DNA of 63,921 nucleotides, counting the filler, from Hyphochytrium catenoides (taxonomy: Eukaryota > Protista > Hyphochytriomycota): NCBI GenBank assembly GCA_900088475.1. It is 5 parts of 5 records of this genome, joined end to end, with 100 filler letters (N's around TTAATTAATTAA, not from the genome) between each part and the next. Parts side by side here need not be neighbours in the genome. Positions count along the whole stretch, not along the records: positions 39,116 to 58,499 come from FLMG01004496.1; 4 more parts are not named here. One strand, given 5' to 3'. Below the pieces are notes generated by a model. The model worked only from the letters and a program-made list of their open reading frames with translations. It did no database searches and had not been told where the DNA came from. Shown piece by piece: positions 39,116-58,499 of this stretch; position 1 is the first letter of the stretch; the number at the start of each line of letters is the position of its first letter. Made by a program: the position numbers and the translations under genes.

Positions 39116-42080
39116 CTTTGATGTCTCTCTTTTTCTCTCTTTCTTTTTTCTTCTATGCTTGTGCATGCTTGCATTTCTTTTCTCGCCGGGATGGAAATAG
39201 TTAGCGCTGTAAATAAACCTACCTGCTGATATTTCAGGGCTAGCCCACGCGATGGCGTCATGATTCACCGACGTCCAACACCCCTGTCAACGGCTAGAAA
39301 TAAGTTCATCAGTGCGAGCGAAGAAGCACTTTCCGGAGGTTGAAGCGCAGAGATGGATTAAAGGGTCGTACCTCTAAAAGATGTATCTTTCGTAAGCTCG
39401 TAAACAAAATGCATATTGAATTTCTTTTATATCTAATGCCCAAAGAAAGTCCCCCAGACTAAAACTGAGAATGTCAATCTATGACTCTATAGAACTATGA
39501 CTGCTCTTCTTTGAGACCCACGATCGCGCATTAGCACCAGAGAAGAGTTGACCTCACAATTCAGCTGCTGACATTACAGCGGAGCCGCACGGCAGAACTT
39601 GGCACGGGGCTGGCTTGTAAATTGTTTGGGAATTATTAGACTGGCCCATGATCATGGGATACCTCAAAGTGCTAAGTTTGGAGCTCAAGAAATGTACTGA
39701 TAGGCCTCTCTTTATTAACCAGTATCCCTTCCTTCGGCCTCTCAGTACTAAAATTGGATTTTGAGCAGCTTCGGATTCAGTTCCGCCGCCTCTTCTACTT
39801 TCGGAATTGCCCTTCCTCGCCCCAACGTGATTGAGCAGCTCAAAACTTCGGAATTCATCATAATTCCTGTCGCTAGAACTCTACTTTTTACTTTTTCTAA
39901 TGTTCTCTATCTAAATGCTAGAAAGAAGAAAGAAGAGGAAGAAAGGAGGAGACGAGAAGAGGTCAAGAGCTATGAGGTCTTGGTCTCTTCATCAACACGC
40001 TCCCGTCCACCACCACAATCATTATTGTCTCAGAAGGAAGAAGCATAAATAGTAGATTTGGAAGAGATGAAACGTGCATCTTCATCACTCTTAACCAGAC
40101 AACTTAGCGAAGGGTCCAGCCGCTGAAGTGGAATACGCTTCACAATCTGAAGCGCAGTTTCTTCACGGAATATAGCCAAGGAGACTCTGGTATGAAGGCG
40201 TAAAGCCATTGCCAGGCAGGACCAATGACCATGATGCCGAGAAGCACCAGGAGCAGAGCAATCAAATTGAAGCTTCACAAGTAGTTCCACATCAACAGTC
40301 AGTCAAGGACACGAGGCATAGCTCCTCCCATGGACTTGCTAACTAGCGGGACAAACTGCCGCCCTACAACCTGACAAGGAACCTCGTACTTCTTCAACTT
40401 CGTTTTTTCACCAGCGACCTTGATAGCCGGCATGGACTGCTGCATAATAAAAAGAAGGGTTCTGATTGCAGATGGATTTCTTAGCCAGTCCATAGTGCTT
40501 ACAGGTACAGAGTACAGTGCGGTGAGCTGAAAGGACATCCCCGTTGTTGTGCCTGTGTCCGTCTCGGCCATCCGCTCCGTCTTTTTGCAATCAGTTGCAG
40601 GTATCTTCCATTCTAACACGGTCTGTTTATCTGCTTTCAGCAGAAGTGTCATTGAGTCCTCCTTATAGACGTATATCTCTTGACTTCTCTGTCTTTGACC
40701 AAGCAATCAACATTTTTCCTCTTTCTCTATCTTCAGAACAAACTCGTCCCAGAGGAGTGGGTAGTCCCATGATCCTTTCGTTGGGTGGGGGACAAGAGGC
40801 TTGAGATCAAGTCTTGTGTAAAAAACTGGACCTTTGATCCTCCCTCACCCATTCGTATTTACCCTTGCCCAGGAATGTCATTCTTCTTTCAGAAGGAAAC
40901 CCTGAACGTAATCCGCGACATCTGAACAGAGGTTGTGATTCGTTCCACTTTCTCTCAATGCCAACGTCAGATTCCGAATAGGACAACGCCTGGCCGCAGA
41001 CTCCGAATATAGTGCGCTTCTATGTAGCAGGTTACAGAAAATACTAGTTTGTGCTTTGAAGTGAAAGGCCCTTTACAAGAATCTTCAATACCGCAACCGA
41101 TTATAAGAAAACTGTCGAAGTCAAGGATACTCAGAGACCTGGTGCCAATTTGGGGTTGGCTTGCGAACTGTCTCGAAGAAAAACCGATAAGAGTTAGGTT
41201 TTCTGTCGTTATCAACAACATCGGGGCGGCAACTACCTAAAGAAGCGCCTCCTACTGTCCTAGCCTTCCATCTTCAAACACTTGACAGAGAAGAGGACGA
41301 GGAAAAGGAGGGAACAAGAGATACAGCATACGCGCGATACAGAGTGAAGAAAACTCGCAGACAGAGACCGCTAGTATGGGGTATGGAGTAGGGATTCTGG
41401 ATCCCTCGAGGTGTACTTTTCAGGGTGAGAGAGACATACAAAGAGACAGGACATTGAGAGACAGAGAGAGAGACAGCCGAGAGTCAGAAGGTTTGAAGGC
41501 AACAGAGAGACAGCCAAAATAGAATAGAGACAGGGATTGAGGGAGAGAGAAAGACAGAGAGAGAGTGAGAGAGAAAGAAAGAGGGAGGGGATGATAGTGA
41601 GAGAAGGGGGAAGAGAGGGCGAGAGAAAGAGAGAGAGAGCACAAAGAGAGAGCGAGCAAAGAGATTGAACAGAGAGAGAGGAGGTGAGAGGAAAGGTTCC
41701 ATGACAAAGGAGGGTAGTCATTAGCCAGAGCGATCAAGCAACCATAGCCGCCGCGTCTGTCTACCCTCTCAAAGTCAAAAATTCTCATCCGCAGCCAGCG
41801 CCTAAGAGTGCACACAACAAGTTCAAGCCTTAGACTCTCTCTTTTGCTCTTTCTTTCTCTGTTTTCTCTGTCGCTAGCGCGCATGAGACAGCGAGGAAGA
41901 GCGCATAACCGTCTCTCCAGAACTTTCAGCCGGACCCGCATCGCCATTGAGGGCAAATAGCTTTACGTCTCTCTAAAAGAAAGGGAAAGAAATAGAAGCT
42001 CACGCGTCTCTTCCTCGCCTCTTTCGACGATTTATCGCCTTTTTTCCAATTCATTTCTTTGAATCCACCCAGTAAGCGCA

Positions 42081-43700
42081 ATGGCTTCTCCAATGAACGG
42101 ATCTGCTAACAAGGAAGTTGAGACGGACAATGTCCGCAGCGAGATGGTNNNNNNNNNNNNNNNNNNNNNNNNNNNNNNNNNNNNNNNNNNNNNNGGCATT
42201 GGTCGCTTTACTGGCCTTCTGGCTCAGAAAACTCAGTCTCTTCTGGCTGTTGAGTTCATGGAGAGCTTCTGCGAGAAGAACAGAGAGCTTCACGGGCATT
42301 TGCCCAATGTGACCGTCCAGCAGGGCGATGTGACGGCGCTGGAGCTGCCTGAGGGGTCTTTTGACTTGGTCTTCTCAAACTGGCTGATGATGTATCTCTC
42401 GGATGAGGAAACCTGCCGCCTTGCGCAGAACTCGCTCAAGTGGCTGGCTCCAGGCGGCCATGTCTTCTTCCGTGAGTCTTGCTTCAAGCGCTCTGGCGAC
42501 GTGCCAAGAACGTCCAATCCCACGAACTATCGTCATCCTAGCTTCTATCACGATGCTTTCTCTAAGGCCTTCATTGAGGAAGCAGACGGGACGATCTCTA
42601 AGTTCGAGCTGGTCTCTTCACGCTCAGTTTCTGCCTACAGGCAACTTAAGGGCAACCAGGGCCAGATCACCTGGTTGTGGAAGAAAGTGAACGTGAAGGA
42701 GTCCGTTCAGGACTTCCAGGACTTCTTAGACTCTCAGCAGTACACGAGAGTGGGCATTCTGCGCTATGGTACGTGGAGAACAACATCCTTCTTTTCCTTA
42801 AATCTTAAGAGCTTTCTTTTGTCCTTTCTTCCTTCTCTTCTACTTCCTATAGCTCGGTAGCAGTCCATCCCAGCGGGATCGCTGTTCTCCTTTTACATTG
42901 TCTTCCGTCGGTCTCTGGTGTCTTGATACCTTTCCAAAGCACTGACCGCAATCCTTCTTGTTCCCTTTCTCATCTTTATAGAGAAAATCTTTGGCGCCGG
43001 GTATGTGAGCACTGGAGGCCCTGAGACGACGGAGGAGTTCGTTGCTTCCCTTCAGCTTGAACCTGGACAGCGTGTTCTAGACGTAGGATGTGGCATTGGA
43101 GGCGGAGACTTCTATATGTCAGAGCGCTATGGAGCAGAGGTTTATGGTATCGATCTTAGCACGAACATGGTAAACATCGCTCTGGAGAGAACCGTGCAGC
43201 AAGGAAGGACCGATGTTCAGTTTGAAGTCTGCGATGCCACCAAGAAAGTCTTCCCTGAGAACCACTTCGATGTCGTCTACTCCCGTGACACGATCCTGCA
43301 CATTGAAGATAAGGCTTCTCTCTTTGCCAAGTTCTTTAAATGGCTCAAGCCAGGCGGACGTCTACTTATCTCTGACTACTGCTGCGGAGAAAGAGAGCAC
43401 TCAGACAGATTTAAGGCGTATGTTGCGCAGAGAGGCTACCATCTTCTATCTGTCCCTGCGTACGGCAGAGTGATTGAGAGTGTCGGCTTCACCGATGTGG
43501 TTGCCGAGGATAGAAGCCAACAGATGATAGAGATTCTGCAGAAAGAGATGAGCCGCACAGAGAAAGACAAAGAGGCCTTCATCCAAGAGTTCAGTGAGGA
43601 GGATTTCAACTATCTGATCGAGGGATGGAAGGCTAAGGTTGTGCGCGTAGGTGAGGGGGACCAAGCATGGGGCCTGTTCAAGGCCAGAAAGCCTCTTTAA
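42081..43700 (+). CDS. PEAMT: Phosphoethanolamine N-methyltransferase, two SAM-methyltransferase domains (plant-type), with an assembly gap at 42149-42194
   Basis: Domain 1: [36 protein letters not shown]. Linker [16 protein letters not shown]. Intron at ~42769-42981. Domain 2: [53 protein letters not shown]. Confidence 0.95.
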
Positions 43701-44040
43701 CTGGACGGGGAAGGAGATGGATGAAGAGCCGCAAAATGGGAACAGGAGACACGCAGAATTTGATAGCGGAGTGTGACAGAGTATAATAAAAGATCTGCAT
43801 TTGCACTTGAAAACTGTGTGAAGAGATAATTGGAGAGCCCGTAGATGGCCTTAGGGCCTTCCTGCCCAGCTGATGACGCGGTTGGTTCATCGCCTTATAG
43901 GCCACAGCCTTTCTTAGTGTGCTCACTATAGACTTAGCTGCTTTAAATAGTGTGCTGGCTGAGGCTAGCCTTCGAGTCTTTTCTACCCTGTATGTCCACA
44001 ACCCGATCAGCAAACAGAAATATGGATCAGATCGAAGAGG

Positions 44041-44858
44041 TTACTGGGCCTTGCTAGGTTGATCATAAGCAAGACCGCGAAGCAGATTCTTCATTCGCGC
44101 GCGATCGGGACTTTCTCTACAGAGTAGGTAGCATTGGAGTAAGGCAATTGGACAAGGAAAGAGAGAGCGCAGAGACGAGACATTAAGGCCGACACTGGAA
44201 GAGAGCACGAAGAAAATCTTCGATCAACATTAGGCAATCGACGAGAGCACGGCGATGATGGTTGGCGAGAGGTTATCAGTTAGGAAAGAGTCCGAGACTT
44301 AGCCATGTGGGAAAGGAAGAAACTCACTGCTTGGAGTCAATCGTCTTCCAGACTTTCTCCCAAGGATTGTTTACCGAGTTCTGCTGTTCTGCTTCAGTCG
44401 TCTGGCACTCCCTGCCGCAATGGAGAGGGAGAGGATAGGGATTAGACGCAACACTGAAAGGGTTTGGAAGGCGAGACAGAAAGAAATAGAAAGGGACATA
44501 GAGACAGAGAGAAGAGAGTAAAAGAAATCGGGCACCGGAACGAGCTCAGACCCTCACTGATCATCAAACACGGTAGGGAGCGGTTACCTGTTTGCTGCTT
44601 GGCGTGCTGCTAGAGCGTCAGTTCGAGCATTGTAGAAGTGATCGAGGTCCTAAGGATGGAAGGACGCGGCAGGGTAGTAAGTGCACCCACTCACTGAACT
44701 CTGAAGATAAGCTGTCTACCTCCTCAGCCTTCAACTTCTTCTCCTCTACCAGGCTCTTCTCACTCTTGGCCTTCTCCTCAACCTTCTGCTGCCACACGCG
44801 ATCGAGCTTCTGTAGTGCATCCTCTTCCTCTGGAGTCGGCGTCGCATTCAGGAGATGT
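44041..44858 (-). CDS. Clathrin light chain core and C-terminus (4 exons), lacking its own start; predicted 3' part of a fusion with the upstream peptidase
   Basis: Exons 44858-44720, 44649-44588, 44411-44328 and 44116-44041 give EEEDALQKLDRVWQQKVEEKAKSEKSLVEEKKLKAEEDLDHFYNARTDALAARQAANRE..NPWEKVWKTID..DRARMKNLLRGL. This matches the light chain helix, the FY..R....NR motif, the WE.V motif and the D.SRM..L motif. Confidence 0.8.
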
Positions 44859-45030
44859 CTGCAGAGACAACAACATTGCTAATGAGACGAAGTCATTCTG
44901 CTTCCCTCTCTCGCCTTGATTCTTTCCATGACCGGGCCTCCTCTCAGAACCATAATAGAATAACCAAGCTCTCGTGTCTCTCCTCCACGTCCCATCTATC
45001 ATGCTCTTTCGTCGGGGTTTCCCCAGCCAC

Positions 45031-46612
45031 TCACTGTGAACTTCCATTTGAGTTGTGCTCTTCTGACGTGAGGGAGGAAAGAACCTGGAATAAAGCCTCA
45101 AAGAACGAGCGCTGATCCTCCTCAGGAAGGACGTCAAACGGCGGTACGTGGACAAAAAGGGAGACCTTGGAAGATGAGGGCGAGCGGAAGAATGTGAGAG
45201 GATATCCCTACCAGCTCTATTTCCCCCGAGCGTCTCAGACGCCCGTGGAGGTACCGCCCCAGTCATCTCCTCATTAGCTCAGGTCTCCGCCCTCACCAGT
45301 GCCCTTTCTCTCCTTATTGCTTGCGCATCCCCCTACAGGACTTTACGACGTACTATTCTTTGCCATTCCTCTCGACCTCTCTCTCCCTCCTTCTTTCTTT
45401 CTTTCTTTCTCTCCTTCTTCCTCTCACTCTCTCTCCCCTTTTTCTTTTTCTTTTTCTACCTCTCTGTCTCTCTGTCTCTCTCTGTCTCTCTGTCTCTCTC
45501 TCGATTTTGTGATCTTTCGCCTCAGGCGGAATATTCCTCACCGAGTTATTGTCTGGCTTCGAACACCAACATAGAGAGGAGAAGTAGGTATAGTTGCAAA
45601 TATATCGGCCCGGATCTGTCGACACGGCCACGGGCCAGGGTCCTCTCTCTCTCATCAGAGTCGCTAACTGCTCACAGTCCAAGGCCGTGGTCCTCTGAGC
45701 CGGCTGTCCCTCTTCCACTGGCACTCTGTTGGGCATGTTGCCCCGCTCATCGGGGATCTCAAATTTTGCTTCGTTGTAGGCACAAGACTCTAAGTTTATT
45801 GTCTGAGCATAGCCGTTCAGCCCCATATGGATGAGCACCTTTCGCTTGTTGGGAGACTAAGAACAGCGGAAACTCCCGGTTAGAGCAGAAACAGACAGGA
45901 GAAGGAAGGTAAACGAAGAGAAGAAGAAGAGGCATAGAGCCCCAAGAGAGAGAGCTTAGATGAGACCGAAAGACACCGAGATTTCTGAGATAGAGAAAGA
46001 GAGCGAGAGGGAAGCGGGGAAGACAATGCATACAGAGACAGAGAGAGAGAGAGGTGCGAGAAAGAGACCAAAGGCAGAGCTCCAAATGGCCTTATGTTTA
46101 CCTTTGAGCAGTGATTGAGCACCCGAGGCAGCGCTGTCTGGACGCCTAAAGGGAAGGACCACAGGATAGTAAGATAATACGAAGGAGCAAATAGTTAGAA
46201 AAAGTCGGGGCCAGAGAGCGAAGGGGGGAGAAGAGGGAGTATGACCTGAGGCAGACGACAGATTCACAGAGAGAGAGAGTGTGTCTCATGAAAGAGAGAA
46301 GAAAGATTAGCAAGCGAGTAAGAGATGGAAACGTGAGAGAATGTGCCATGGAGAGAGGAAGCGAGGAAGCATGCAGCAGAGTAAAATAGACAGAGGCAGA
46401 ATGTGTAAGAGCGCGAGAGAGTGTAAGCAGGACCAAGGATGTAGCTATTGGCTCCTCTGACCTTCTATGGAGACCTCAATGACTGTTGAGGATGCGATAA
46501 GCGGATGGACCTGGAAGTACTTGGCCAGATACTCCGTAGGGTTCGTGTTATTCTGACCGAACCTGCCGAAGCCCGTGAGATGGATCTCTACCGCGGGATC
46601 AGCTGACGACAT
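45031..46612 (-). CDS. PGPEP1: Pyroglutamyl peptidase I (MEROPS C15), 4 exons
   Basis: Exons 46612-46462, 46145-46102, 45856-45542 and 45165-45035 give IHLTGFGRF....NPT, LIHMG, INLESCAYN (Glu), PDERG, STDPGRYICNYTYF (Cys) and SLFVHVP (His). The catalytic triad is intact. Confidence 0.93.
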
Positions 46613-47731
46613 GGCTGTGACACAAGCCAGACTCCTTTATTAGGATGTGGATGAGCTGAAACCTGAAGGCGCAAGGAGCTCGCTTGAAGGATGAGAAGCC
46701 TTCTACTCGTTGATAAGATAAGGGATGAATAGAAGTCAAAGATCTATCTCTCTTTGCCAGTCTCACTAACACGAGGGATCCCTTGCTCTCTGCTAGCTAG
46801 TGTAGGTTGATGAACTATTGAGAGTGGACTAGGTCCAGCATCCAGCAGAAGCCGACGNNNNNNNNNNNNNNNNNNNNNNNNNNNNNNNNNAGAGAGAGAG
46901 AGAGAGAGAGAGAGATGAGAGAGAAAATAGAAATCTTTCTTATTATCGCCGAAACAGCATCTTTCTGTCCTTTCCTCTCATTTTTTTGCTGCTTCTGAGT
47001 GATGTGGTCGGACCACTCCAGCTCCTGGGGAGCATCTCAACTACCTCATAATTAACCAAAATTGCCTAGTACTAGTTTCTGGATAATTGGTACTAGTTTC
47101 GGGGACCAAATTTGGGATTGTATATTTATACTGTACAGTAGTACTCGTGCAACCTTTTTCGAGGTGAGGCCTTATCCAGTTTATTTAACTCTAGAGGGAG
47201 GATCACTCATAGATCTATTAATCGATTATTTGAAGGGTCTTCTTTTCAGTTATCGATGGAGCGCATCACCGTTCTCATTCTTACAGACCAAACGAAGCGG
47301 CGCCGCGCGCATCACCAGCAGCAGCCGCCACACCGCCAGTCGAAGACCGAGCACCAGCAGCAGCTGCACTCATCAGCCTAGTACATTGTCTCTCTCTATC
47401 CATCTCTCTATCTATTATCTATCTCTCATGTCAAGTCTTTAGCAAGTCTGATGTTGAGACAGTCTTCTTCAGCCCGATTATTGAAAGAACCCGCGAGGTA
47501 GGATTAACGGTATGTTCAGGAAGCCCGACCACCTGAGGTCGCAATGTCCGTGATCTTGTGGCTAAAATCCGATCAAGCGGAAGATTCTTATCTCTAACAA
47601 GAGTGCAGACAAATGTCGCCGCTTCCGTGTCCCGGATGACGTCAAAGGAGACCAAGGATGCAAGAGAAATGCAAGCGTAGGGGGCAATAACGGCTGCTTA
47701 GGCCGAAGCTCTAAAGGCGCTTGAAGCAAGC

Positions 47732-50436
47732 ATGAAAGAGGTGCAACATTCCCGCGCCGAGCTGCCATCTACTTCTAAAGATGTCACCGGGAGCAGGGGA
47801 GGCTCGCAGAACAACAAACCAGAGAGATTGCGAAGACTCATCAAGGCGACGCGAAATCAGAATCATCAGCACCTTCCAGAGATTGTCAGCTCCGTACAGC
47901 ACTCTGCCCGCCGCCTCTTCTCCCGCTATACTATCACGAATGACAAGGAGACGGCGAAGTATTTGCCATACAGCGAGGTCTCTTACCCTCGTCTGCAGCT
48001 TCGAGCCACAGGAAGTGGCGCTCTAGAGCTGAATAGCGAACAGAAGATGGGAGGCGCCAGTGCCTTGCAGAATATGTGGATGGTGGGTCTGGTAGACCAT
48101 GAGACGCACAAGGCAGCAGCAACTCTGAAAGACTCCTTGGAACTGGGTCCGAAATCGGTAAGTGAGAGGGACGTACCGAAAGAGAGAGACAGAGATCGAC
48201 AGAGACAGCGAGAGGGAGAGAGAAACAGCGAGAGAGAGACCAACAGAGAGGGAGAGAGACAGAAAGGGAGAGAGAGAAAGAGGGAGAGACTTGTCCCAAA
48301 AGAAGACAATACAGTGACACTCAGGCAGAGAAACTATTGTGGACGACAGAGCCAAGAGGAGCCAATGGAGGAAAAGAAAGCAGCAGACCATAAGCACTTG
48401 TAAGGGATAAGGGAGAGGGAATAAGGATGTGGACAGCCACAAAGCCATGACCATTAACAAATATGAAGCAGCAGGGAAGGCATCAGGCTATGTGCTGCTT
48501 ACTGTCCCCAGAAGAAGAAGGAGAGAAAGACAAGAAAAAGAAAACAGAGAGAGAGAGAGAGAGAGAGTTCGTTTAGGAGGGAACTCCGAAAAAATATGAC
48601 CACTATCTAGCTAACTTACCATGCGCCGCACGTCAGAAGGTTGGACCGGCTGAGGGCTGCGAGACAAAGGAGGTAGAAGGGTATACAAAGGGCCTTTCGG
48701 TGCAAGATAGAATGCGACTGAAGGAGCTGCAGGAAGCTTTAGACAGAAGGAAGAAGAAGGTAACAAACCGCTCGTTGGCTGCTAGGTCGTAACGCCGCCC
48801 ACCAATGACTCTCTCTCTCTCTTTCTCTCCTTCTGTCTCTGCCCTCTTAAAGGTTGCACTCTCTCTTCCTGTCGCCCTGCATCCTCTCCACTCTTTTTTC
48901 CGTGCCCTCTCTTCATCTCACCCTCTCGCCGCCTCTCTTTTTCTATCATACTTCTTCCCTTGTCACAGTCTGTTCGCCATGACCCTTTTCAAGTATATCG
49001 TGCTGAGAATCAGAAGCTGCATAAGATGAGGAGAGACCTGAAGAAGAAGCCGAAAGCGTAAGAACACGTTGGGAGAAGGACCGTCGAGGGGAAAAGAAAA
49101 GGAGACAGTCCACATCTTTTGACCTCTCTTCCCTCGGGCAGAACCACGTCTTCCTAGGGCCCAATCGCTCCACATTCCTTCCTGTCTCTAGCTGTCTAAT
49201 AACCCCCTCGTCGCTCTTTTTCTCCTTCGACCTTCTTTGACTCGTTGTGTTCGCTCTTTGTATTAGGCAAGTTCACTCCTCAGCAATGGAAGAGCTGGTC
49301 TTCCTGGATAGAAAGTATACGCGGGTAGGGAGTCGCCCAAAGTTAGGCAGCTAACTTCTTCCTCTGTCTCTCTTTCTCTCTCGTTCTCTCCTCCCGCTTC
49401 CCCTGTCCTTCATTCGACGTCTTTTGTGCTGTTCCACCTCTCTCCTCTTATAACAACTATGACCTTCTTCTCTTCGTAAGCTCTGACATCTTTTTCTTCT
49501 TTGTCTCTTCCACACTTCTCTTTCTCATTCAGGCGGCGACCATCATTCAACGTTTCTTCAAAATCTACAAGCATCGCTGCGAGCTGATCAAGAAGAAAGA
49601 TCTCTCCCTTTACGCAATCTCGATACAGGTGACGTGGGCTTAAGCTTTCCTCTTCCCACCTGCTGGGCTGGCCCTTGTAGCTGTTTCTCCACAGTCCTAA
49701 GCCCCCTACCTAGCTAACATTTCTCTCTTGTTTCTCTCTTGGTTTGTCTCTTCACCTCTTGCTCTCCTGGAGTCTCGCTGTTTCTGTCCATATCGCTAGT
49801 TCCATCAAGGACCTTCATTTACTATCCCTTTGGACATCCTCCCCTTGATGTCTCATTCTTTGTGTGAAGGCTTGTAGGGTTCCGATCCCTTAATAGTCTG
49901 TCTTATCCCATTGAGTTTTGGTTTGGATATTCTTCTTCTTTTCGCTTTCTTCTGTTGACTCACGCTTTGTCTCCTTTTGCTTCTCTCTATACCACTCTCT
50001 CTCTCTCTCTATCTATCTATCTCTGGCTTCCTCTCCGGGCGTTGTTTTCTGTGGCCATCAGCGGATATGCCGCGGTTACTTGGTGCGGAAGCTCGTAAAG
50101 CTGTGGCACTATCACAGAACGATCTTGGTCACCCGGATCCAGGTAGGGCTACAGAGTGAGCCGAGCAAAATAGAGACGGGAAGTCGAGGGAAAGAGCAAT
50201 AGGGACGGGCAGAGGGAGAGAGAGGAAAGTAGAGAGAGAAATTGGTGCTTCAGAATCTTTCCGCCTTGACTCTCTCGCCCACGATATATTTCCTTATCCT
50301 ATCTTCTTTGATTATCCATGTTCTGGAGCTGAGCTTTCGTCTCTCTCACCCACTCTCTCTTCTGTCACCTCCGTTTCCCTACTCTTCTGTCTTCTCTCTC
50401 TTTGCATGGTTTCGAATCTCCGTGTCTCTGTCTCTG

Positions 50437-50492
<56 letters not shown>

Positions 50493-52730
50493 GCTCTGTC
50501 AACGTCTAGGCCGTGCTAAGAGGCCATCAATCGAGAAAAAGGTCCAAGAAATATATCAGGGACAACGATAGACGTGCCATCATTCTTCAGACGCTGTGGA
50601 GAGGGAGAAGGGCGAGACGCGTTGTTTGTCTTCTACGTCAAAACATTGCCTGTCTCCTAATTCAAACTACGTGGAGAGGATATAGAGGAAGGAAAGAGGG
50701 AAAGAGAAGAAAGAGAGACGCTCTCGTGGTCAGGATACAGAAGATTTTCAGAGGTGCACTTGTACGGATGCACTTCCCCTCCTGGAAGGAGGAGAGAGTC
50801 GGAGCAGCGATTGCCATACAGAGGATCGTACGAGGATATAGGGTAAGGGTACTCTCTCAGGATTTTCAGCTCTCTCTCTCTTGCTTTTTTCTCTCTCTCT
50901 CTCTCTCTCACTCTCTCTCTCTCCTCTCCTCTCCTTTCCACTTTATCTTGTCGGTGCTCTTGTCTCTCTTTTCACTTACTCTCTCAGTGACCGATCATCT
51001 TATGCTTGTCGAACTTCTGTCGTGTGTTGCTTGTAGGTCAAGCTACTGCGCGACCGCCTTCTCTATGAGAGAGAGACGCGGATGCGTGAGGAATGGATCG
51101 CTGTGCTCAAGGCTGAGATTTTATGGGCGACGGACAAGAGAGACTGGGTGATCAAACGGTTTCATAAGACTAACCTACGAGAAAAGTAGGTCCTGGTTAC
51201 TCATCGTTTTATCTAGCAGTGGTCTTCCTCTCTCTCTGTCTCTTTTCTCCACGAGCCTCTTCCCTATCTCCTTTCTGTCTTGGCCTCTTCATCTCTCTCT
51301 TTGCTCCTGAATAGCCCATTACATTGCCTCGAAGCCCTTCTACGACACGTTGAGTCTGGCTCTCAACCTCCTAAGTATGAAATTCTTGGCACAGGGTAGA
51401 ATCTCTAGAAGCTGAGGAGTACGAGAAGAGAGAGGAGATCTATTCCTTGGAGTACGACTATCTTGAACTCATCAAAGAGAGAGCGAGAGTATCCCCGCGG
51501 GCTATACAGCAGGGCTGGGTTCAGGAGCTGGACGCTAGCATATCCTTCCCAGCGTTTGCCCATAAGCAGCGACCTCCCTGGTCTACACTCTCCCACTTTC
51601 TCTCTCTGTGTCCTTTCCTTTCTCTCTCTTTCTCTCTCTCTCTCTCTTTTTCTCTCTTTCTCGCTCTCTCTCTCTCTCTGTCTCTCTCTCTCTCTGTCCC
51701 TCGTTCCCTCCCTCTCTCTGTCAGATCGCCCATTGAGAAACTTCTTAACTTCTTCTGCACATCAAAGATTATAGAGACAAGATTACTGCTGCCAAGGCCG
51801 AGTGTCTTTTCAAGCTTTGCTTCCGCCTCCGAAAGGCCGAGGAAGCACTGGAGAGATGGGAGAGAAGAATAGAGAAAGCTTCCTTAAGGATAGAAGAGCT
51901 AAAAAGATGGAGAGAGGAAGAGCTTGAAGAACTTTGGGCGGTAAGGAAGAGACGGCCGCGCGGAGAAAAGAAGAGGAGAGGAAAGAGAGAGTCTCTTCTC
52001 TCTGCCAGAAGTCTCTTTATCGCAAGCACGCCCTACCTTTAGATACTCACGCTACTTTTCTGTTGTCTCTCTCCCTCCCTCTTCTTCCCGGTCTTGTCTT
52101 CCACCGACGCCATTTGCGCTTCGAACCATAAAGAGGGAGGCTTACAGGCAAGGAAAGGCAGCCGTCGTTGAGCGGAAGAGGAGGATCGCTGATCAGAAGA
52201 GGAGATGGAAAGCGCAGCTTCTTACTTCGTCAGGTAGCACCCACATACATACTTCTCATAACGCATAATTTTCTTTCATGCTTCTCCTCCTCCCCTCTCC
52301 CACGTTCTTCCATCCAGTACTATGCCTCTCTTCTTTTTTTCTCTTTCTCTGTCCTCCCTTCGTTAGTTATTCTTTTGCCTTTCTCTCTCTGTTCTCCCTC
52401 TCCCTCTCTCTCCCGCCCGCTTTTCGGCTCTCTGACTCTCTCTTTATCTCCATTCCTCCTCTCTCTCTCAGTTCGTCCTCTTTATCTCTCCTCTCTCTCT
52501 CTCTTCTTTCCTCTGTCTCTCTCTCTGCACTCGTACTCTTTCTCTATCTTTTCTCTCTCTCTCGCTCGCTCTCTGTTACGCTCTTGCCGTGCGTTCTCTT
52601 CTTCTTTCTTCTCTGTGTCCGGGTTTCTACCTATGATATCGCCTTAAAATCTGTGATTTACCTCACCTGTGGGAGGTCTACTTCCGCTGACCCTCGAACC
52701 GTCTCGCGTTCTCTCTCTCTCCCCTCCCTT

Positions 52731-52769
<39 letters not shown>

Positions 52770-53688
52770 TCCATGTCGCCAACTCTCTCTTCCAGGCAAG
52801 CCACGCAAGAAGCTCGCCCGGTCTTTCCTCTCTTCGGAAGACGACGCCTCCGCACTCTCTCTCTCTTCTTGCGCTAACTTAGCTCGGGTTAACCTTCTCG
52901 CCAAGCTTCACTTTCAGCCGAAACGAGGGAGAATCACAGGTCTTCCCATTGTTTCTGAGGAGGTTCTCTCCTCTCTTGAGGCAGCAGTGGAGAGTGTCGA
53001 GCTGCAGCAAGCGGTGAACCAGGTGGCGCAGTATGAAGCAGCACTGCAGCCTGTAATAGAGAAAGTGACAGGCACGATGCAGAGTGTGTTCAGTGGCAAA
53101 GACAAGGAAGCAATAGCTGCAAAAGAGACAGAAGGAAGCGATAGCAGAGAGCCTACTCCCCCGGTAGACGGAGGGCCCTCAGCTGGAAGAGTGGAGAGAG
53201 AACAAGAAAGAGAAGTTCCGGTCTATCGCTCTCAGGATGCCCTCAAACGTAGTGCCGCTATATTAGCGGACGAAGGGAAGCGAGGGCTACGGATTTCGAT
53301 ACCTAGAAGCTTACCCGCTGTCACTGAAGCAGAAGAAAGAGAAGAACTTGAAGACAAGATAGTGACAGAGTTAGCGGGCACCAGAGAGACAGAGAAGGAC
53401 TCAGTTGTCATGCCAACAGCCACACAGTCCGCGGCAAGGCGTCCAACTCATGAAGAAGCTCTTAAATTTATAGAAAAGGGTCAGAGACAGGTTGCCGACG
53501 GCTTCAGTGAAGAAGAGAGAGGTGCTCCTTCGCTCTCAAAGCGGGAGCTGAAAGCTCTCACTGACGTTGCACAGACGCAAAAAGTTCGGCGGGCCATGCG
53601 GGCAACCTCTGTCCCTTGGGATCTTCTCTCTGAGCTCGAGGGAGAGAAAGAAAAGTTTCTAGCAGAAAAGGCTATGGGAAGATGGTAG
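47732..53688 (+). CDS. Multi-IQ calmodulin-binding motif / coiled-coil protein, about 11 exons
   Basis: Six or more IQ motifs (AATIIQRFFK, IQRICRGY, IQAVLRGH, LQTLWRGR, IQTTWRGY, IQKIFRG, IQRIVRGY), a coiled-coil segment SPRAIQQGWVQELD, and a last exon ending VPWDLLSELEGEKEKF..W*. The start codon and first exons are less certain. Confidence 0.8.
51540..51760 (+). other. U12-type (minor spliceosome) AT-AC intron
   Basis: 5' end ATATCCTT (51540-51547), branch site TTCTTAAC (51742-51749), 3' end AC (51759-51760). Removal joins ..ELDAS to IKDYRDKIT.. in frame. Confidence 0.88.
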
Positions 53689-53854
53689 TAGACCTCTGAC
53701 TCTTTCTCTGATTATGACGAAGGATGGAGGCGAGGAAGGAGATGCTATAAGTCTAACGCTACGTTATTCCGTATATGGGAGGAGAGAGGGTGAAAGAGGA
53801 GCAGGAGAGAGCGAGAGAGGTAGATGGGGAGACAAACCAGAAAGATATACCCCT

Positions 53855-53890
<36 letters not shown>

Positions 53891-54040
53891 CGTTGGGGGA
53901 GCAGAGAGAGCGAGAGACACACACACAGAGAGAGAGAGAGAGAGACACACTGAAAGAGAGAGAGAGAGAGAGACGAAATAGAGGAAGGCTCGCAACGAGC
54001 CCAAATTATTTATTATATATCCACACAGACTGGTGTGCAT

Positions 54041-55210
54041 CTATTCCATATCGTCCTCTCCCTCATCCTCCTCGTCCTCAGCGAGCTGCAACTCCTCCAG
54101 GGCCGCGATCTGCCTGGCCAGCGCCGAGGTCATGAAGGTCAAAAAGGCATAAGAAAACATCGCTAGAGAGGCCAGGACGACGGATATCTTCGTTCTGCGC
54201 CTCATTCTCTCCTCTGCTGCTGTCCTGGGCTCTTTTTGTTTCTCTTCCTGGGGAGAGTGAGTGGTAGAAGAAGATGTAGGAACTTTAGAGACAGCGCTTC
54301 GAGCAGGTGGGCGGTAGATCTTCCACTCTCCTACGTCTACGGCTGCAGACGACGCCATCACAGCGGCAGGAAGAAGGTTAAATTTGTTCTCTTCGTTCAT
54401 CGTGTACGATGGCCTATCCGTCGCTCCTGTGTCTCTCCAAGCAGCCTCTTTCTCTCCGACTATTGCGGGAGAAGGGAAGAACTCTTTCTGCACCCGGAGA
54501 GTAAACTCTAAGAGGTTGGACGCATGAGAGCGCACGAGGGGCGCTAGATTGATATCGCTCAGCGCGTCCACTAAGTGGCCGAAGAGTGAAGCATCTAATG
54601 AGGTTGGCCTGTAGACAATGACACATAGAACAAGAGAGAGAGAGCGAGAGAGAACGAGGGAAGGAGAAGATACGAGGGAAAAAAAAGAGAGAGAAGGAGA
54701 GAGAGGATAAGAACTAATTAGAGCATGGAAAGAAAGATTCAAACTATTCGGGGGGAGAAAGAGGGCGAGAAGTGGCATCCTGGTATGATATGGAGAACAT
54801 CTCCCTTCATAGTCAATGGTCAGGGGGACAAAGAAAGATGTACATTCCCTCCTGGAGAAATAAGAAGGAAGCTGGAGAGAGAGAGAGAGAAAGTGTGAAG
54901 TATGCTATTTTTTCTACCTGTCGCCGAAGCAAAACTTCTTCTCTCCTAACTTCTGACTCAGTGCCCGATAGGCGTCTTCTGCCTGCTGTCGGACCTGTTA
55001 TAGGGCAAAAGATTGAAGAATGGGACAGTCAAGAAGAGAGAGAGAGAGAGAGAGAATGAGGAGGAGATGAAAAGGGAGCGGAACGGCTGGCAAAATCCGA
55101 CTAAGTCAAAGACTGACAAGAAGGACGTCAATGAAAGAAGGCCAAGGAAGGACACTTCTCCGTCTTTTGGTCCCCTCTTCTGGGTCATTTTTGAGACACA
55201 TTCTTCTCTC

Positions 55211-55241
<31 letters not shown>

Positions 55242-57068
55242 CCCAACCTCTCGACAAAACTGATTCCTACCTCTTCTCCTGACTGCAAGTTCTTCTTGGT
55301 GAGCAGGCCCTTGAGTTCCTTCTGTCGGTAGCCAGGGAGGAAAGTGTTGAGGGGAAAAGGCAGCACCTGTGCCTCCGACGGCCGAGTCGTCTGCTCAAAG
55401 TTTTTCATGTCTACCCACCGGCTATAGAGCTACAGAGGGAAGAGAGACGACAGGAGAGACTAAGTAAGAGAGAACTGAAACAGGAGAAAGTGCGAGAGAG
55501 ACATAGAGAAAGAGGAGAGAAAGGAGAAGGTGGGAACGCAAACTAAGGACATAGTGAAGGCGAGAAGACAAGAGAGAGAGGGCCAAAGAGAGAGAAAGCT
55601 AGATAGTGTCGTAAGGAGCGGATTTTTTCACTCCTTTCCTTCTTCCCGGTTCTGTGACTCCATCAGCTCTCTTCTCTCTCCTCGCCTAACTTTCTTCGCG
55701 TTCCCATCCTTGTCAACCATCTTCTCTTATCCTCCTTGAGGGCCACGGCTCTCAACAGCCTGTGAGTCGTGGTTCTAAACCTATTCCGCTTTCCCTTCCC
55801 CTTCCCTCTCTCCTCTCTCTCTTCCTCTCTCTCTCTCTGTCTCTCTTCCCTCCATTCTCGCATTCTGTCTTTATGTCTCTCTCTCCTTTATACTCGTTAG
55901 TTCTCGCTGCCTCCCTCTCTCTTGCTCTCTCTCTCTCTCTCTTGCTTCCTTTCTCACACTCTGCTTGTCGGTTTCTTTGTTATCCTCTCCGTACCAGTGC
56001 ATCGGTCAGTGAAGTCTCTATCAGGGAGCGGAAGGCTGCCACATCGGCTCTTTCCGTGGCAGAAAGTTCCGAGTCTAGATCGTGATGGAACTGAAGGGGA
56101 GACATGGGGTGTCAGGAGAGAGGGCGAAAAGAGAGAGAGAGAGAGAGAGAAAGAGAAGAAAGAGAAACAGAGAGAGAGAGGAAGGGAGGGAAGGCAATGG
56201 CGAAGAAAAATCTGAGAGAAAGAAACCCTGAGAGAGAATAGTAGCAGAGAGAGAGAGAGAGAGTGACAGAGATCAAGAGAGAAAGGCAGAGAGAAGAGAA
56301 AAGTCGGAAGAGAGAGAAACAAAGGCAGACGAGGACAAGAGAGAGAAAGGAGAGAGAGAGAGAGACAAGAGAGGTAGGTTGTGCCTAGGTGCAGACGAAG
56401 AGCAAAAGAGCTTAATGTAGCTCGTGATCAGACTGACTGAGAACTTTTCGAAGCAGCGCAGGATGGAGACAGAGGAGAAAAGAATAATATTAGCAAAGGA
56501 GAAAACAAAGCCAGAGAGAGAGAGTTGGAAAGATGTTGAGGAGAGAGAAGAGACGTCAGTGAGGGAGCAGCCAATGACCAAGAAAAGGGAGACATAACGC
56601 CTTGAGGTGACGAAGAGAAACATAAGAGAAGAAGAGAGAGAAAGATCCAAAAGCGCAAAAGGATGGATTCGAGGATGGGAAGAGAGAAAGAGAGAGTTCA
56701 CCTTCTGCATATGAGTGAGAATACTACCGGAAGGGACGAGAAAGAATCCATCGCGCAGCTGAGGAAGTGACCCTAGAAAGAGAGAAGAGAGAAAGGAAGA
56801 AAGATTAGTAAGGTATGAAGAGAACGAGGGTGAAAGAGGAAAGAAAGAGGAAAGAAGCATGGAGGAGAAGAATGATCTCAGAGATAAGCATCTTCTTTTG
56901 CACGACTTCTTTGGCAAAAAGACGAGAGGCGCTCATGTTTGGAAGAGAGAGAGAGAGAGGGAGAGGGAGAGAGCGCAGAGATAAACGCCGGCTGAATGTC
57001 CTCAGTCTGTTTAACGATCGCCTCTCCTTCCTGTCTTCTCATCTCTTGAAAATATCCCTCTCGACCTT

Positions 57069-57134
<66 letters not shown>

Positions 57135-57332
57135 CGCCCCTGTCTCTTGCCCACTCTATTGCCTCTTTTGGCTTCTTCCTTCACTCGTTTCTAATGTCTC
57201 TCTTGGCCGGACCTGAGGCGATGGACTCTGGGTACCTCCAGTTCTGTATGTGCAGCCTCAAACCCGAGAAGCGGGCATAAGCCTAACAGGGAAATATGAG
57301 TGAAGAGAGAAAGCATAAGAGAAAGAGGCCAA

Positions 57333-57382
<50 letters not shown>

Positions 57383-58135
57383 GAGAGNNNNNNNNNNNNN
57401 GGGGGGGGGAGGAGGAGAGAGAGAAAGAGGGAGAGAGAGAGAGAGAGAAAGAAAGAAAGAAGAGTCAATGGTAGCGACAACTGCGTTTCGCAGTGGAATC
57501 GATATGACAATAAGAGAGAGTAGGCAAATTATGACAAGGAGTAAGAGTAGCCAGAGAGAGGAAGAGATGGATAGAGCAAGAGAGAGAGAGTGAGAGAGAG
57601 ATGTCCAGGGAAATGTAAACATGCAGAGAGGAACAAAGATTTAGAAGGGAGAGGCCGAAGATGAGAGTCTGAGAGGAGAGAGCAGATCAGAGGTGACCTG
57701 CACGGCCCAGGCTGGTCGGTACTGCACTAAGACTAAAGGCTCCTCCATTGGCTTGCATAATGACCTAGAGAAAGAGAGAGAGAGAGAGAGAGAGAGTGAG
57801 AGGGAGGGAGAGAGAGAGAGAGAAAGAAGAGGAAGGAGAGGGCGAAGGAGAGAGAAAGACAGGGAGAAGAGCATTTACAGAGAAAGAGGAAGAGATAAGA
57901 GGAGAGCGTGTGAGAAGGTGAGAGAGTGAGTAAGGAAGCGAACGAGAGGGAGAAAGAGGGAGAGGGAGAAAGGGAGAGAGAGAGGTATCGAGCCTGTGAA
58001 GCGACAACAGCTTCTCTCCACCGCTTACTTGGCTTTCTCGAAGAGCGCTCTGTCGTCCAAAGGAATCTCCTCCTGTTCTTCCGGCCTCCCGATCGTCGAC
58101 CGGAGCTTCTCCTTCAAATGCTTGAAGCTCTCCAT
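54041..58135 (-). CDS. Metaxin (MTX1/Sam37-like) mitochondrial outer membrane protein, about 8 exons
   Basis: Spliced peptide: AVQAYARFSGL, SGSLPQLRDG..SILTHMQK, DLDSELSATERADVAAFRSLIE, WVDMKNF..LPFPLNTFLP, YRALSQKLGEKKFCFGDRPTSLDASLFGHL, NLLEF, then a C-terminal TM helix and acidic tail. Exon 1 (58135-58029) is phase-compatible with exon 2. Confidence 0.9.
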
Positions 58136-58438
58136 CTCTCTTTCTCTTTCTCTCTCTCTTGTTCTCTGACTTCGTTCTCTCTCCTGTCTCTATCTACGCT
58201 GTCTCTTCTCTCTCGCCGTCCGTCTTTTGAGCTCTGGAGGCTGTTCCAGATTCAAGAGATTTTGGCGAAGAGGAAAGAGAGCTGTTGATAGCCCTGTCAA
58301 CAAGAGAAGCCGAGAGAGAGAAAGAGAATGACCCAAGCAGCAGAAGAGGAATGACATCGTTGGCAGAGAGCCAGAATTGGGCTAAACAGAGCTTTAATGA
58401 GAGGTATGATGGAGGAAGAGAGAACGAGAGACTGACAA

Positions 58439-58492
<54 letters not shown>

Positions 58493-58499
58493 CACAGAC

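Follow-up and report, generated by a model that had tools for sequence, protein, structure and literature searches.

A pyroglutamyl peptidase I gene of Hyphochytrium catenoides with a candidate in-frame clathrin light chain-like tail

Clathrin light chains are regulatory subunits: through their N-terminal part they control how the lattice assembles and how, via Hip1R/Sla2, it is linked to actin, and their EED N-terminal sequence binds the heavy-chain knee and Hip1/Hip1R/Sla2. Clathrin tolerates a globular domain of about 25 kDa before the light-chain helix, as in engineered N-terminally tagged light chains, e.g. CLCa carrying green fluorescent protein (GFP-CLCa). The domain layout of light chains is preserved between species, whereas their sequences show little similarity; most of the function of the Dictyostelium light chain lies in its C-terminal domain, and the critical heavy-chain-binding tryptophans are W105 and W127 of CLCb (PMC8712872, in which GFP-tagged light chains are also mentioned). 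Pyroglutamyl peptidases I (MEROPS C15, PF01470; e.g. Pyrococcus furiosus 1IOF and Saprolegnia SDRG_01610) are free proteins of 190–230 residues, and none of those searched has a light-chain-like tail. Here, we describe a locus of the hyphochytrid Hyphochytrium catenoides (GenBank assembly GCA_900088475.1) at which the two families may have been joined. The window is a stretch of 63,921 nucleotides composed of five parts of this genome, filler included, in which positions 39,116–58,499 come from record FLMG01004496.1; all positions given below are those of the whole window. The element in question is best read as a single minus-strand gene at 44041–46612, in which exons 1–4 encode a peptidase and exons 5–8 would add a 120-residue, largely helical tail of the light-chain type.

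The region 43800–46900 was read on the minus strand, and the eight-exon model put forward in the original prediction was then rebuilt mechanically. Its exons (151+44+315+131+139+62+84+76 = 1002 nt) gave an uninterrupted product of 333 residues followed by TAA, with zero internal stops, as had been claimed. All seven introns run from GT to AG with a pyrimidine-rich stretch ahead of each AG, and the predicted intron that links the two halves was recovered with the same boundaries, donor, TGCAG acceptor and phase. The features of the gene are as follows.

Exon 1, 46462..46612, minus strand: ATG at 46612–46610; N-terminus of Peptidase_C15 with the LTGFG motif; a weak C15 match (profile positions 3–37) that aligns with homologue N-termini.
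Exon 2, 46102..46145, minus strand: 44 nt, peptidase; the homologue alignment is continuous over both of its junctions.
Exon 3, 45542..45856, minus strand: Peptidase_C15 core with catalytic Glu88 (45790–45788) and Cys152 (45598–45596); matches to Pfam (39.2 bits, E 1e-9) and to PDB entry 1iof (E 2e-8).
Exon 4, 45035..45165, minus strand: catalytic His176 (45150–45148) and the last peptidase helix.
Linking intron, 44859..45034, minus strand: 176 nt, phase 2, donor GTGAGT, acceptor ctctgcag.
Exon 5, 44720..44858, minus strand: linker, EEED patch (from 44830), Trp236 (44794–44792) and the start of a Glu/Lys-rich helix.
Exon 6, 44588..44649, minus strand: FY...AANR block, which aligns with the last part of the CLCa heavy-chain-binding segment.
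Exon 7, 44328..44411, minus strand: WEKVW..ID block, in which WEKV is identical to CLCb residues 192–195.
Exon 8, 44041..44116, minus strand: D-x-x-R-M-K-x-L-L-x-x-L block; TAA stop at 44043–44041.

The GTGAGT of the linking intron is the best donor of the gene, the others being GTCAGA, GTAAAC, GTGAGG, GTAGAC, GTAACC and GTGAGT. Its acceptor sequence reads ...ttgttgtctctgcag, and the protein junction across it would read ...GSSQ/HLLNATPTPEEEDALQK (...GSSQ/HLLN...). A further GTGAGT, 25 nt into intron 5, was ruled out as a donor because it breaks the frame. No family matches were found on the opposite strand or in the other frames of 43681–45571.

Exons 1–4 encode a complete pyroglutamyl peptidase I of family C15. 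Exon 3 alone exceeded the Pfam Peptidase_C15 cut-off of 22.7 bits, and the PDB entries that it matched are pyrrolidone-carboxyl peptidases. The 213-residue product of exons 1–4 aligned over its entire length with free-standing C15 enzymes (local phmmer down to E 1.6e-89), and it shares with the known members named above the fold signature, the length of about 213 residues and the Glu-Cys-His triad. Glu88, Cys152 and His176 occupy invariant columns (motifs LE..A.N, G..CN and F.HVP) of 13 aligned homologues, so that the C15 peptidase with an intact triad described from the sequence alone was borne out by Pfam, the PDB and the alignment. Except for a Hondaea protein with an extension of its own, the C-termini of all 13 homologues lie no more than about 12 residues from where exon 4 ends; the enzyme is therefore already complete ahead of the linking intron. 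Oomycete enzymes are its closest relatives, with approximately 37–43% identity across most of the length. The peptidase is probably active.

The coding character of the remaining exons was assessed with a codon-usage model trained solely on phosphoethanolamine N-methyltransferase exons. In the model frame, exons 5–8 together scored −0.03 bits per codon, versus −0.65 and −0.58 off frame. The peptidase exons, taken as a control, scored −0.06 bits per codon versus −0.71 and −0.36 off frame, and the seven introns −0.15 to −0.77 bits per codon. The signal came mostly from exon 5 (+0.20 versus −0.86 and −0.59 off frame) and exon 7; exon 6 by itself was not discriminating. By codon usage, exons 5–8 look like coding exons. 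That they are instead untranslated, being a decaying light-chain relic or the 3′ untranslated region (UTR) of the peptidase with an open frame produced by the picking of splice sites, is very improbable. Exons of this size (62–139 nt) do allow GT/AG pairs to be picked freely, exon 6 alone adds no coding score and no transcript speaks for them. Against this, the pooled score equals that of the peptidase exons and lies far above those of the off-frames and introns, all four exons are in frame behind good polypyrimidine acceptors, and the light-chain-like blocks described below are intact up to the C-terminus.

Exons 5–8 cannot readily start alone. Exons 5, 6 and 7 contain no ATG in their frame, the first methionine (residue 317) being close to the C-terminus, and eight codons ahead of exon 5 the frame is closed by a TAG. 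These exons can therefore be translated only via the phase-matched donor of exon 4 or via a weak 14-nt mini-exon. The latter was found in a scan of upstream first exons, in which every ATG...GT up to 45600 that joins the acceptor at 44859 in phase was considered. Separate starts within the spacer were confined to mini-exons from ATG 45002, which lies 27 nt past the peptidase stop, of either 14 nt (GTGGAG donor, 44988) or 38 nt (GTTATT donor). ATG 45047, inside exon 4, runs into a stop if the strong donor is used. An acidic first exon of the light-chain type was sought upstream as far as 49500 and was not found; the acidic stretches there were merely microsatellite-derived Glu/Arg/Lys runs.

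Translation into a retained linking intron would add one CAG codon and stop at TGA (45033–45031), yielding a peptidase of 214 residues. A stand-alone 214-residue peptidase that ends at this TGA inside the donor is as readable as the fusion, and because the retained intron yields a normal peptidase the DNA alone permits either a fusion or two neighbouring genes. With two genes, the peptidase would end at the TGA and a light-chain-like gene would begin at ATG 45002 with 14 coding nucleotides, the GTGGAG donor at 44988 and the same acceptor. Its product would be a minimal light chain of 124 residues, with EEED some 15 residues from the N-terminus as in canonical light chains, and the in-frame join would be coincidental. 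We regard this arrangement as unlikely, although it is the strongest competitor of the fusion. Several findings count for it and against a fused transcript: 214 residues is a normal length for the C15 family, nearly all relatives of the peptidase are stand-alone proteins, a phase-compatible ATG...GT mini-exon is present, and the donors of the gene are variable (GTCAGA, GTAAAC, GTAGAC), which keeps the weak GTGGAG donor in play. No RNA sequencing runs are listed for this DNA, so that no junction read is available.

The spacing of genes was measured within the same piece of the window. The genome is compact, which suits two tightly packed genes, with convergent stop-to-stop gaps of 340 nt (43700 to 44041) and 352 nt (53688 to 54041) in the two pairs measured. 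These two gaps also imply only about 170 nt per gene end. The 176-nt spacer amounts to roughly one gene's share of such a gap, and hence would hardly fit a 3′ end together with a promoter and 5′ UTR; the original prediction had likewise noted that the linking intron left little room for an independent promoter. With a start 27 nt past the upstream stop, the promoter and 5′ UTR of a second gene would overlap the last exon of the peptidase. In addition, GTGGAG deviates from the A at +4 and G at +5 that are usual in the donors of this gene. The spliced form is also favoured because two separate genes require, both by chance, a TGA within a perfect GTGAGT (about 1/64) and a matching phase (1/3). 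As a reading of the DNA, the spliced fusion is the most economical: exons 5–8 look coding, cannot start themselves and follow a strong donor of matching phase at a distance of 176 nt. On balance, we judge it rather likely that a fused transcript is made with the linking intron removed.

The original prediction identified the tail as a clathrin light chain, and the searches by database and by direct alignment gave different answers. For Pfam and the PDB, the queries were single exons, a 59-residue core and a 52-residue C-terminal piece, the scores of which cannot add up. For the targeted test, the 120-residue tail was aligned by the Smith–Waterman method to three segments of mammalian light chains taken from the PDB (CLCa 1XI4_J 11–63, CLCb 6WCJ_B 102–154 and CLCb 6SCT_D 187–227), and scores were compared with those of composition-preserving shuffles. 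The tail aligned nearly end to end with the heavy-chain-binding segment of CLCa (1XI4_J 11–63) with a score of 54, which was reached by 41 of 5000 shuffles. This helix block has R-x-W at its start and N-R at its end, and Trp236 is aligned to the first light-chain tryptophan (RKW). The C-terminal block of CLCb (6SCT_D 192–222), from the conserved domain close to the trimerisation hub, was aligned with a score of 40, reached by 19 of 5000 shuffles; here WEKV is identical and is followed by D and then by D-x-x-R-x-[RK]-x-x-L-x-x-L. Both blocks at threshold and in the right order were obtained in 0 of 120,000 and in 16 of 1,500,000 shuffles (p ~1e-5). The blocks are about 16 residues apart in the tail, and the second lies near the C-terminus. 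The corresponding spacing in non-neuronal light chains is 19 residues, and the similar spacing together with the position of the second block adds some weight to a light-chain origin.

The likeness to light chains (PF01086; CLCa/CLCb, 1XI4, 6WCJ and 6SCT) is one of order: an acidic EED-type patch, a Trp-bearing Glu/Lys-rich helix ending in A-N-R, WEKV..D, and D..R.[RK]..L..L near the C-terminus. The acidic patch of the tail, EEED (residues 224–227), directly precedes the helix, and the remainder of the 22-residue conserved N-terminal sequence of light chains is not recognisable. The proposal that the acidic regulatory N-terminus had been replaced outright needs to be narrowed, as this patch is present at the start of exon 5. 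The tail differs from PF01086 light chains in having just 120 residues, with neither an N-terminal region nor a start codon of its own, in lacking an equivalent of W127, in its pieces being unrecognised by Pfam and phmmer, and in the 213-residue enzyme in front.

Other results tell against the light-chain identity. Exons 5–8 singly, as well as the 59- and 52-residue pieces, gave no match to Clathrin_lg_ch in Pfam and, at E ≤ 10, none to a light chain in the PDB. The second tryptophan, which is critical in mammals (W127), has no counterpart in the tail, and p ~1e-5 is near break-even if some 25,000 matchable families are allowed for. The same points would suit a real fusion transcript in which the tail is a lineage-specific, Glu/Lys-rich helical extension (serving, for example, in oligomerisation or localisation) that resembles a light chain by chance. 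The composition of the tail is biased and prone to spurious matches, such as those of its pieces to the myc-tag, FcpA and Macoilin in Pfam and the PDB, and the family-wise significance of the two blocks is merely borderline. Such an extension is nevertheless quite unlikely, and a little more so than two separate genes, given two independent blocks in the right order at similar spacing, the second near the C-terminus, and given that just 16 of 1.5 million composition-matched shuffles equal the tail. The matches moreover fall on the RKW tryptophan, on the NNR with which the heavy-chain-binding segment closes and on the WEKV / D..R.R..L..L block. Since light chains share a layout with little sequence similarity (PMC8712872), weak scores of the tail are explicable. 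We consider the tail to be probably a very divergent homologue of clathrin light chain, the two colinear blocks being suggestive where the Pfam and PDB searches with pieces gave nothing. That a fused transcript is made and also carries a light-chain tail is close to evenly poised, inclining slightly to the negative.

Relatives were searched for the same architecture; the proteins of the window itself are absent from the protein collections used. A full-library search with exon 3 returned 1345 relatives. No trace of the tail was found by local phmmer in the best 150 of these 1345 C15 relatives (cluster representatives), nor did any of 156 relatives of 110–350 residues at E ≤ 1e-10 have such a tail; the 120 listed carry PF01470 alone, bar one without a recorded domain. 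No light-chain gene was found beside C15 in five loci (Saprolegnia, Aphanomyces, Tribonema, Hondaea and a eukaryotic contig). Each of these three outcomes weakens the case for the fusion. The BLAST alignments of C15 proteins from Hondaea and MMETSP seemed to extend into exon 5, but on inspection these extensions proved to be mere alignment tails. With the tail as query, the 59-residue core had no relatives among proteins of 32–103 residues, the 52-residue C-terminal piece had no relative in metagenome contigs, a search of the ESM Atlas with exon 5 gave no usable match, and the spliced exon 5/6 junction was absent from metagenome contigs. In the library of papers searched, none was found that names both pyroglutamyl peptidase and clathrin light chain.

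Fusion of C15 to other modules does have a precedent. Among the relatives of the peptidase, C15-UBA-PTH2 fusions (P0035, P0048, P0078, P0133 and P0115) form a recurrent natural eukaryotic architecture, with an N-terminal C15 domain and an unrelated C-terminal module. Their partner is UBA plus peptidyl-tRNA hydrolase 2 and not a coat protein, and they recur in several sequences, whereas the present fusion has been seen once. Oomycete C15 genes often lie in tandem arrays, and arrays of two or three were seen in Saprolegnia, Aphanomyces and a eukaryotic contig (L001 10001–11755, L002 8767–10698 and L003 6001–8471). A Thraustotheca protein (P0001, 512 residues) has three C15 domains and represents either one protein of three domains or a merger of three tandem genes.

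A path to the fused gene can be proposed. Peptidase and light chain would at first have been two neighbouring genes, and the TGA of the peptidase, lying within GTGAGT, would now act as part of a splice donor. The light chain would have lost its own first exon, and its former second-exon acceptor would have been reused. The tail would then comprise the short EEED patch, a helix of the heavy-chain-binding type with one conserved tryptophan and the C-terminal WEKV...D..RMK..L..L block. Spliced mRNA would give the 333-residue enzyme–light chain fusion, of which each triskelion would carry three, with the enzyme close to the knee of the heavy chain, and unspliced mRNA would give the free 214-residue peptidase. 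The window does not include the heavy-chain gene of this organism. In its fullest form, which we put forward tentatively and as somewhat doubtful, the light chain of this organism would have no promoter or first exon of its own and would be made only as the tail of an active C15 enzyme, with up to three peptidase domains per triskelion and with intron retention as the switch to free peptidase. That activity removing pyroglutamate (pGlu) would thereby be tethered to clathrin coats is speculation. Because substrates with pGlu are formed chiefly inside the secretory lumen, a catalytic connection with a coat in the cytosol is not evident.

Should the fusion be real, it would be a lineage-specific new combination of two well-known domain families, of moderate interest. 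Constructs of the GFP-CLCa type are laboratory-made and retain the entire light chain; the present fusion would be a natural one, with an enzyme as the partner. To our knowledge, no other coat subunit has a built-in enzyme. A natural light chain with a folded cysteine peptidase as its N-terminus would show how dispensable that region is, and would offer a Rosetta-stone hint linking the turnover of pGlu peptides to vesicle traffic. The locus also provides a clear case of a stop codon within a splice donor, the type of arrangement that lets adjacent genes fuse. Should the RNA lack the join, these are just two ordinary housekeeping genes that are unusually tightly packed.

Intron 3 of the gene contains purine-rich microsatellites at 45395–45520, (GAGAGACA)n and (GAAA)n on the coding strand, unlike introns 1, 2, 6 and 7, which are CT-rich. 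Throughout the piece, microsatellites yield long spurious open reading frames (ORFs) that are rich in Leu/Ser/Pro or in Glu/Arg/Lys. An assembly gap of 33 N (46858–46890), flanked by (CT)n, lies about 245 nt upstream of the peptidase ATG, and the promoter region of the peptidase gene is therefore incomplete.

Downstream of the gene, on the plus strand, 42081–43700 encodes a two-domain phosphoethanolamine N-methyltransferase with one intron (about 42768–42980, GTACGT...TAG) and an assembly gap in its first exon. It shares 65–68% identity with its best matches, the closest named protein being from Phytophthora (67%), as would suit a stramenopile with no proteins of its own in the collections, and its stop lies 340 nt from that of the peptidase/tail gene, the two being convergent. 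Further along the piece, the ORF at 50513–51151 (plus strand) carries several calmodulin-binding motifs of the IQ type (Pfam IQ, E 2e-13) and probably represents a single exon within a larger gene. A coding-looking ORF without a family at 52669–53688 (plus strand) ends 352 nt from the stop of a metaxin-like gene at 54041–55408 (minus strand), for which weak Tom37 and GST_C_6 matches were obtained.

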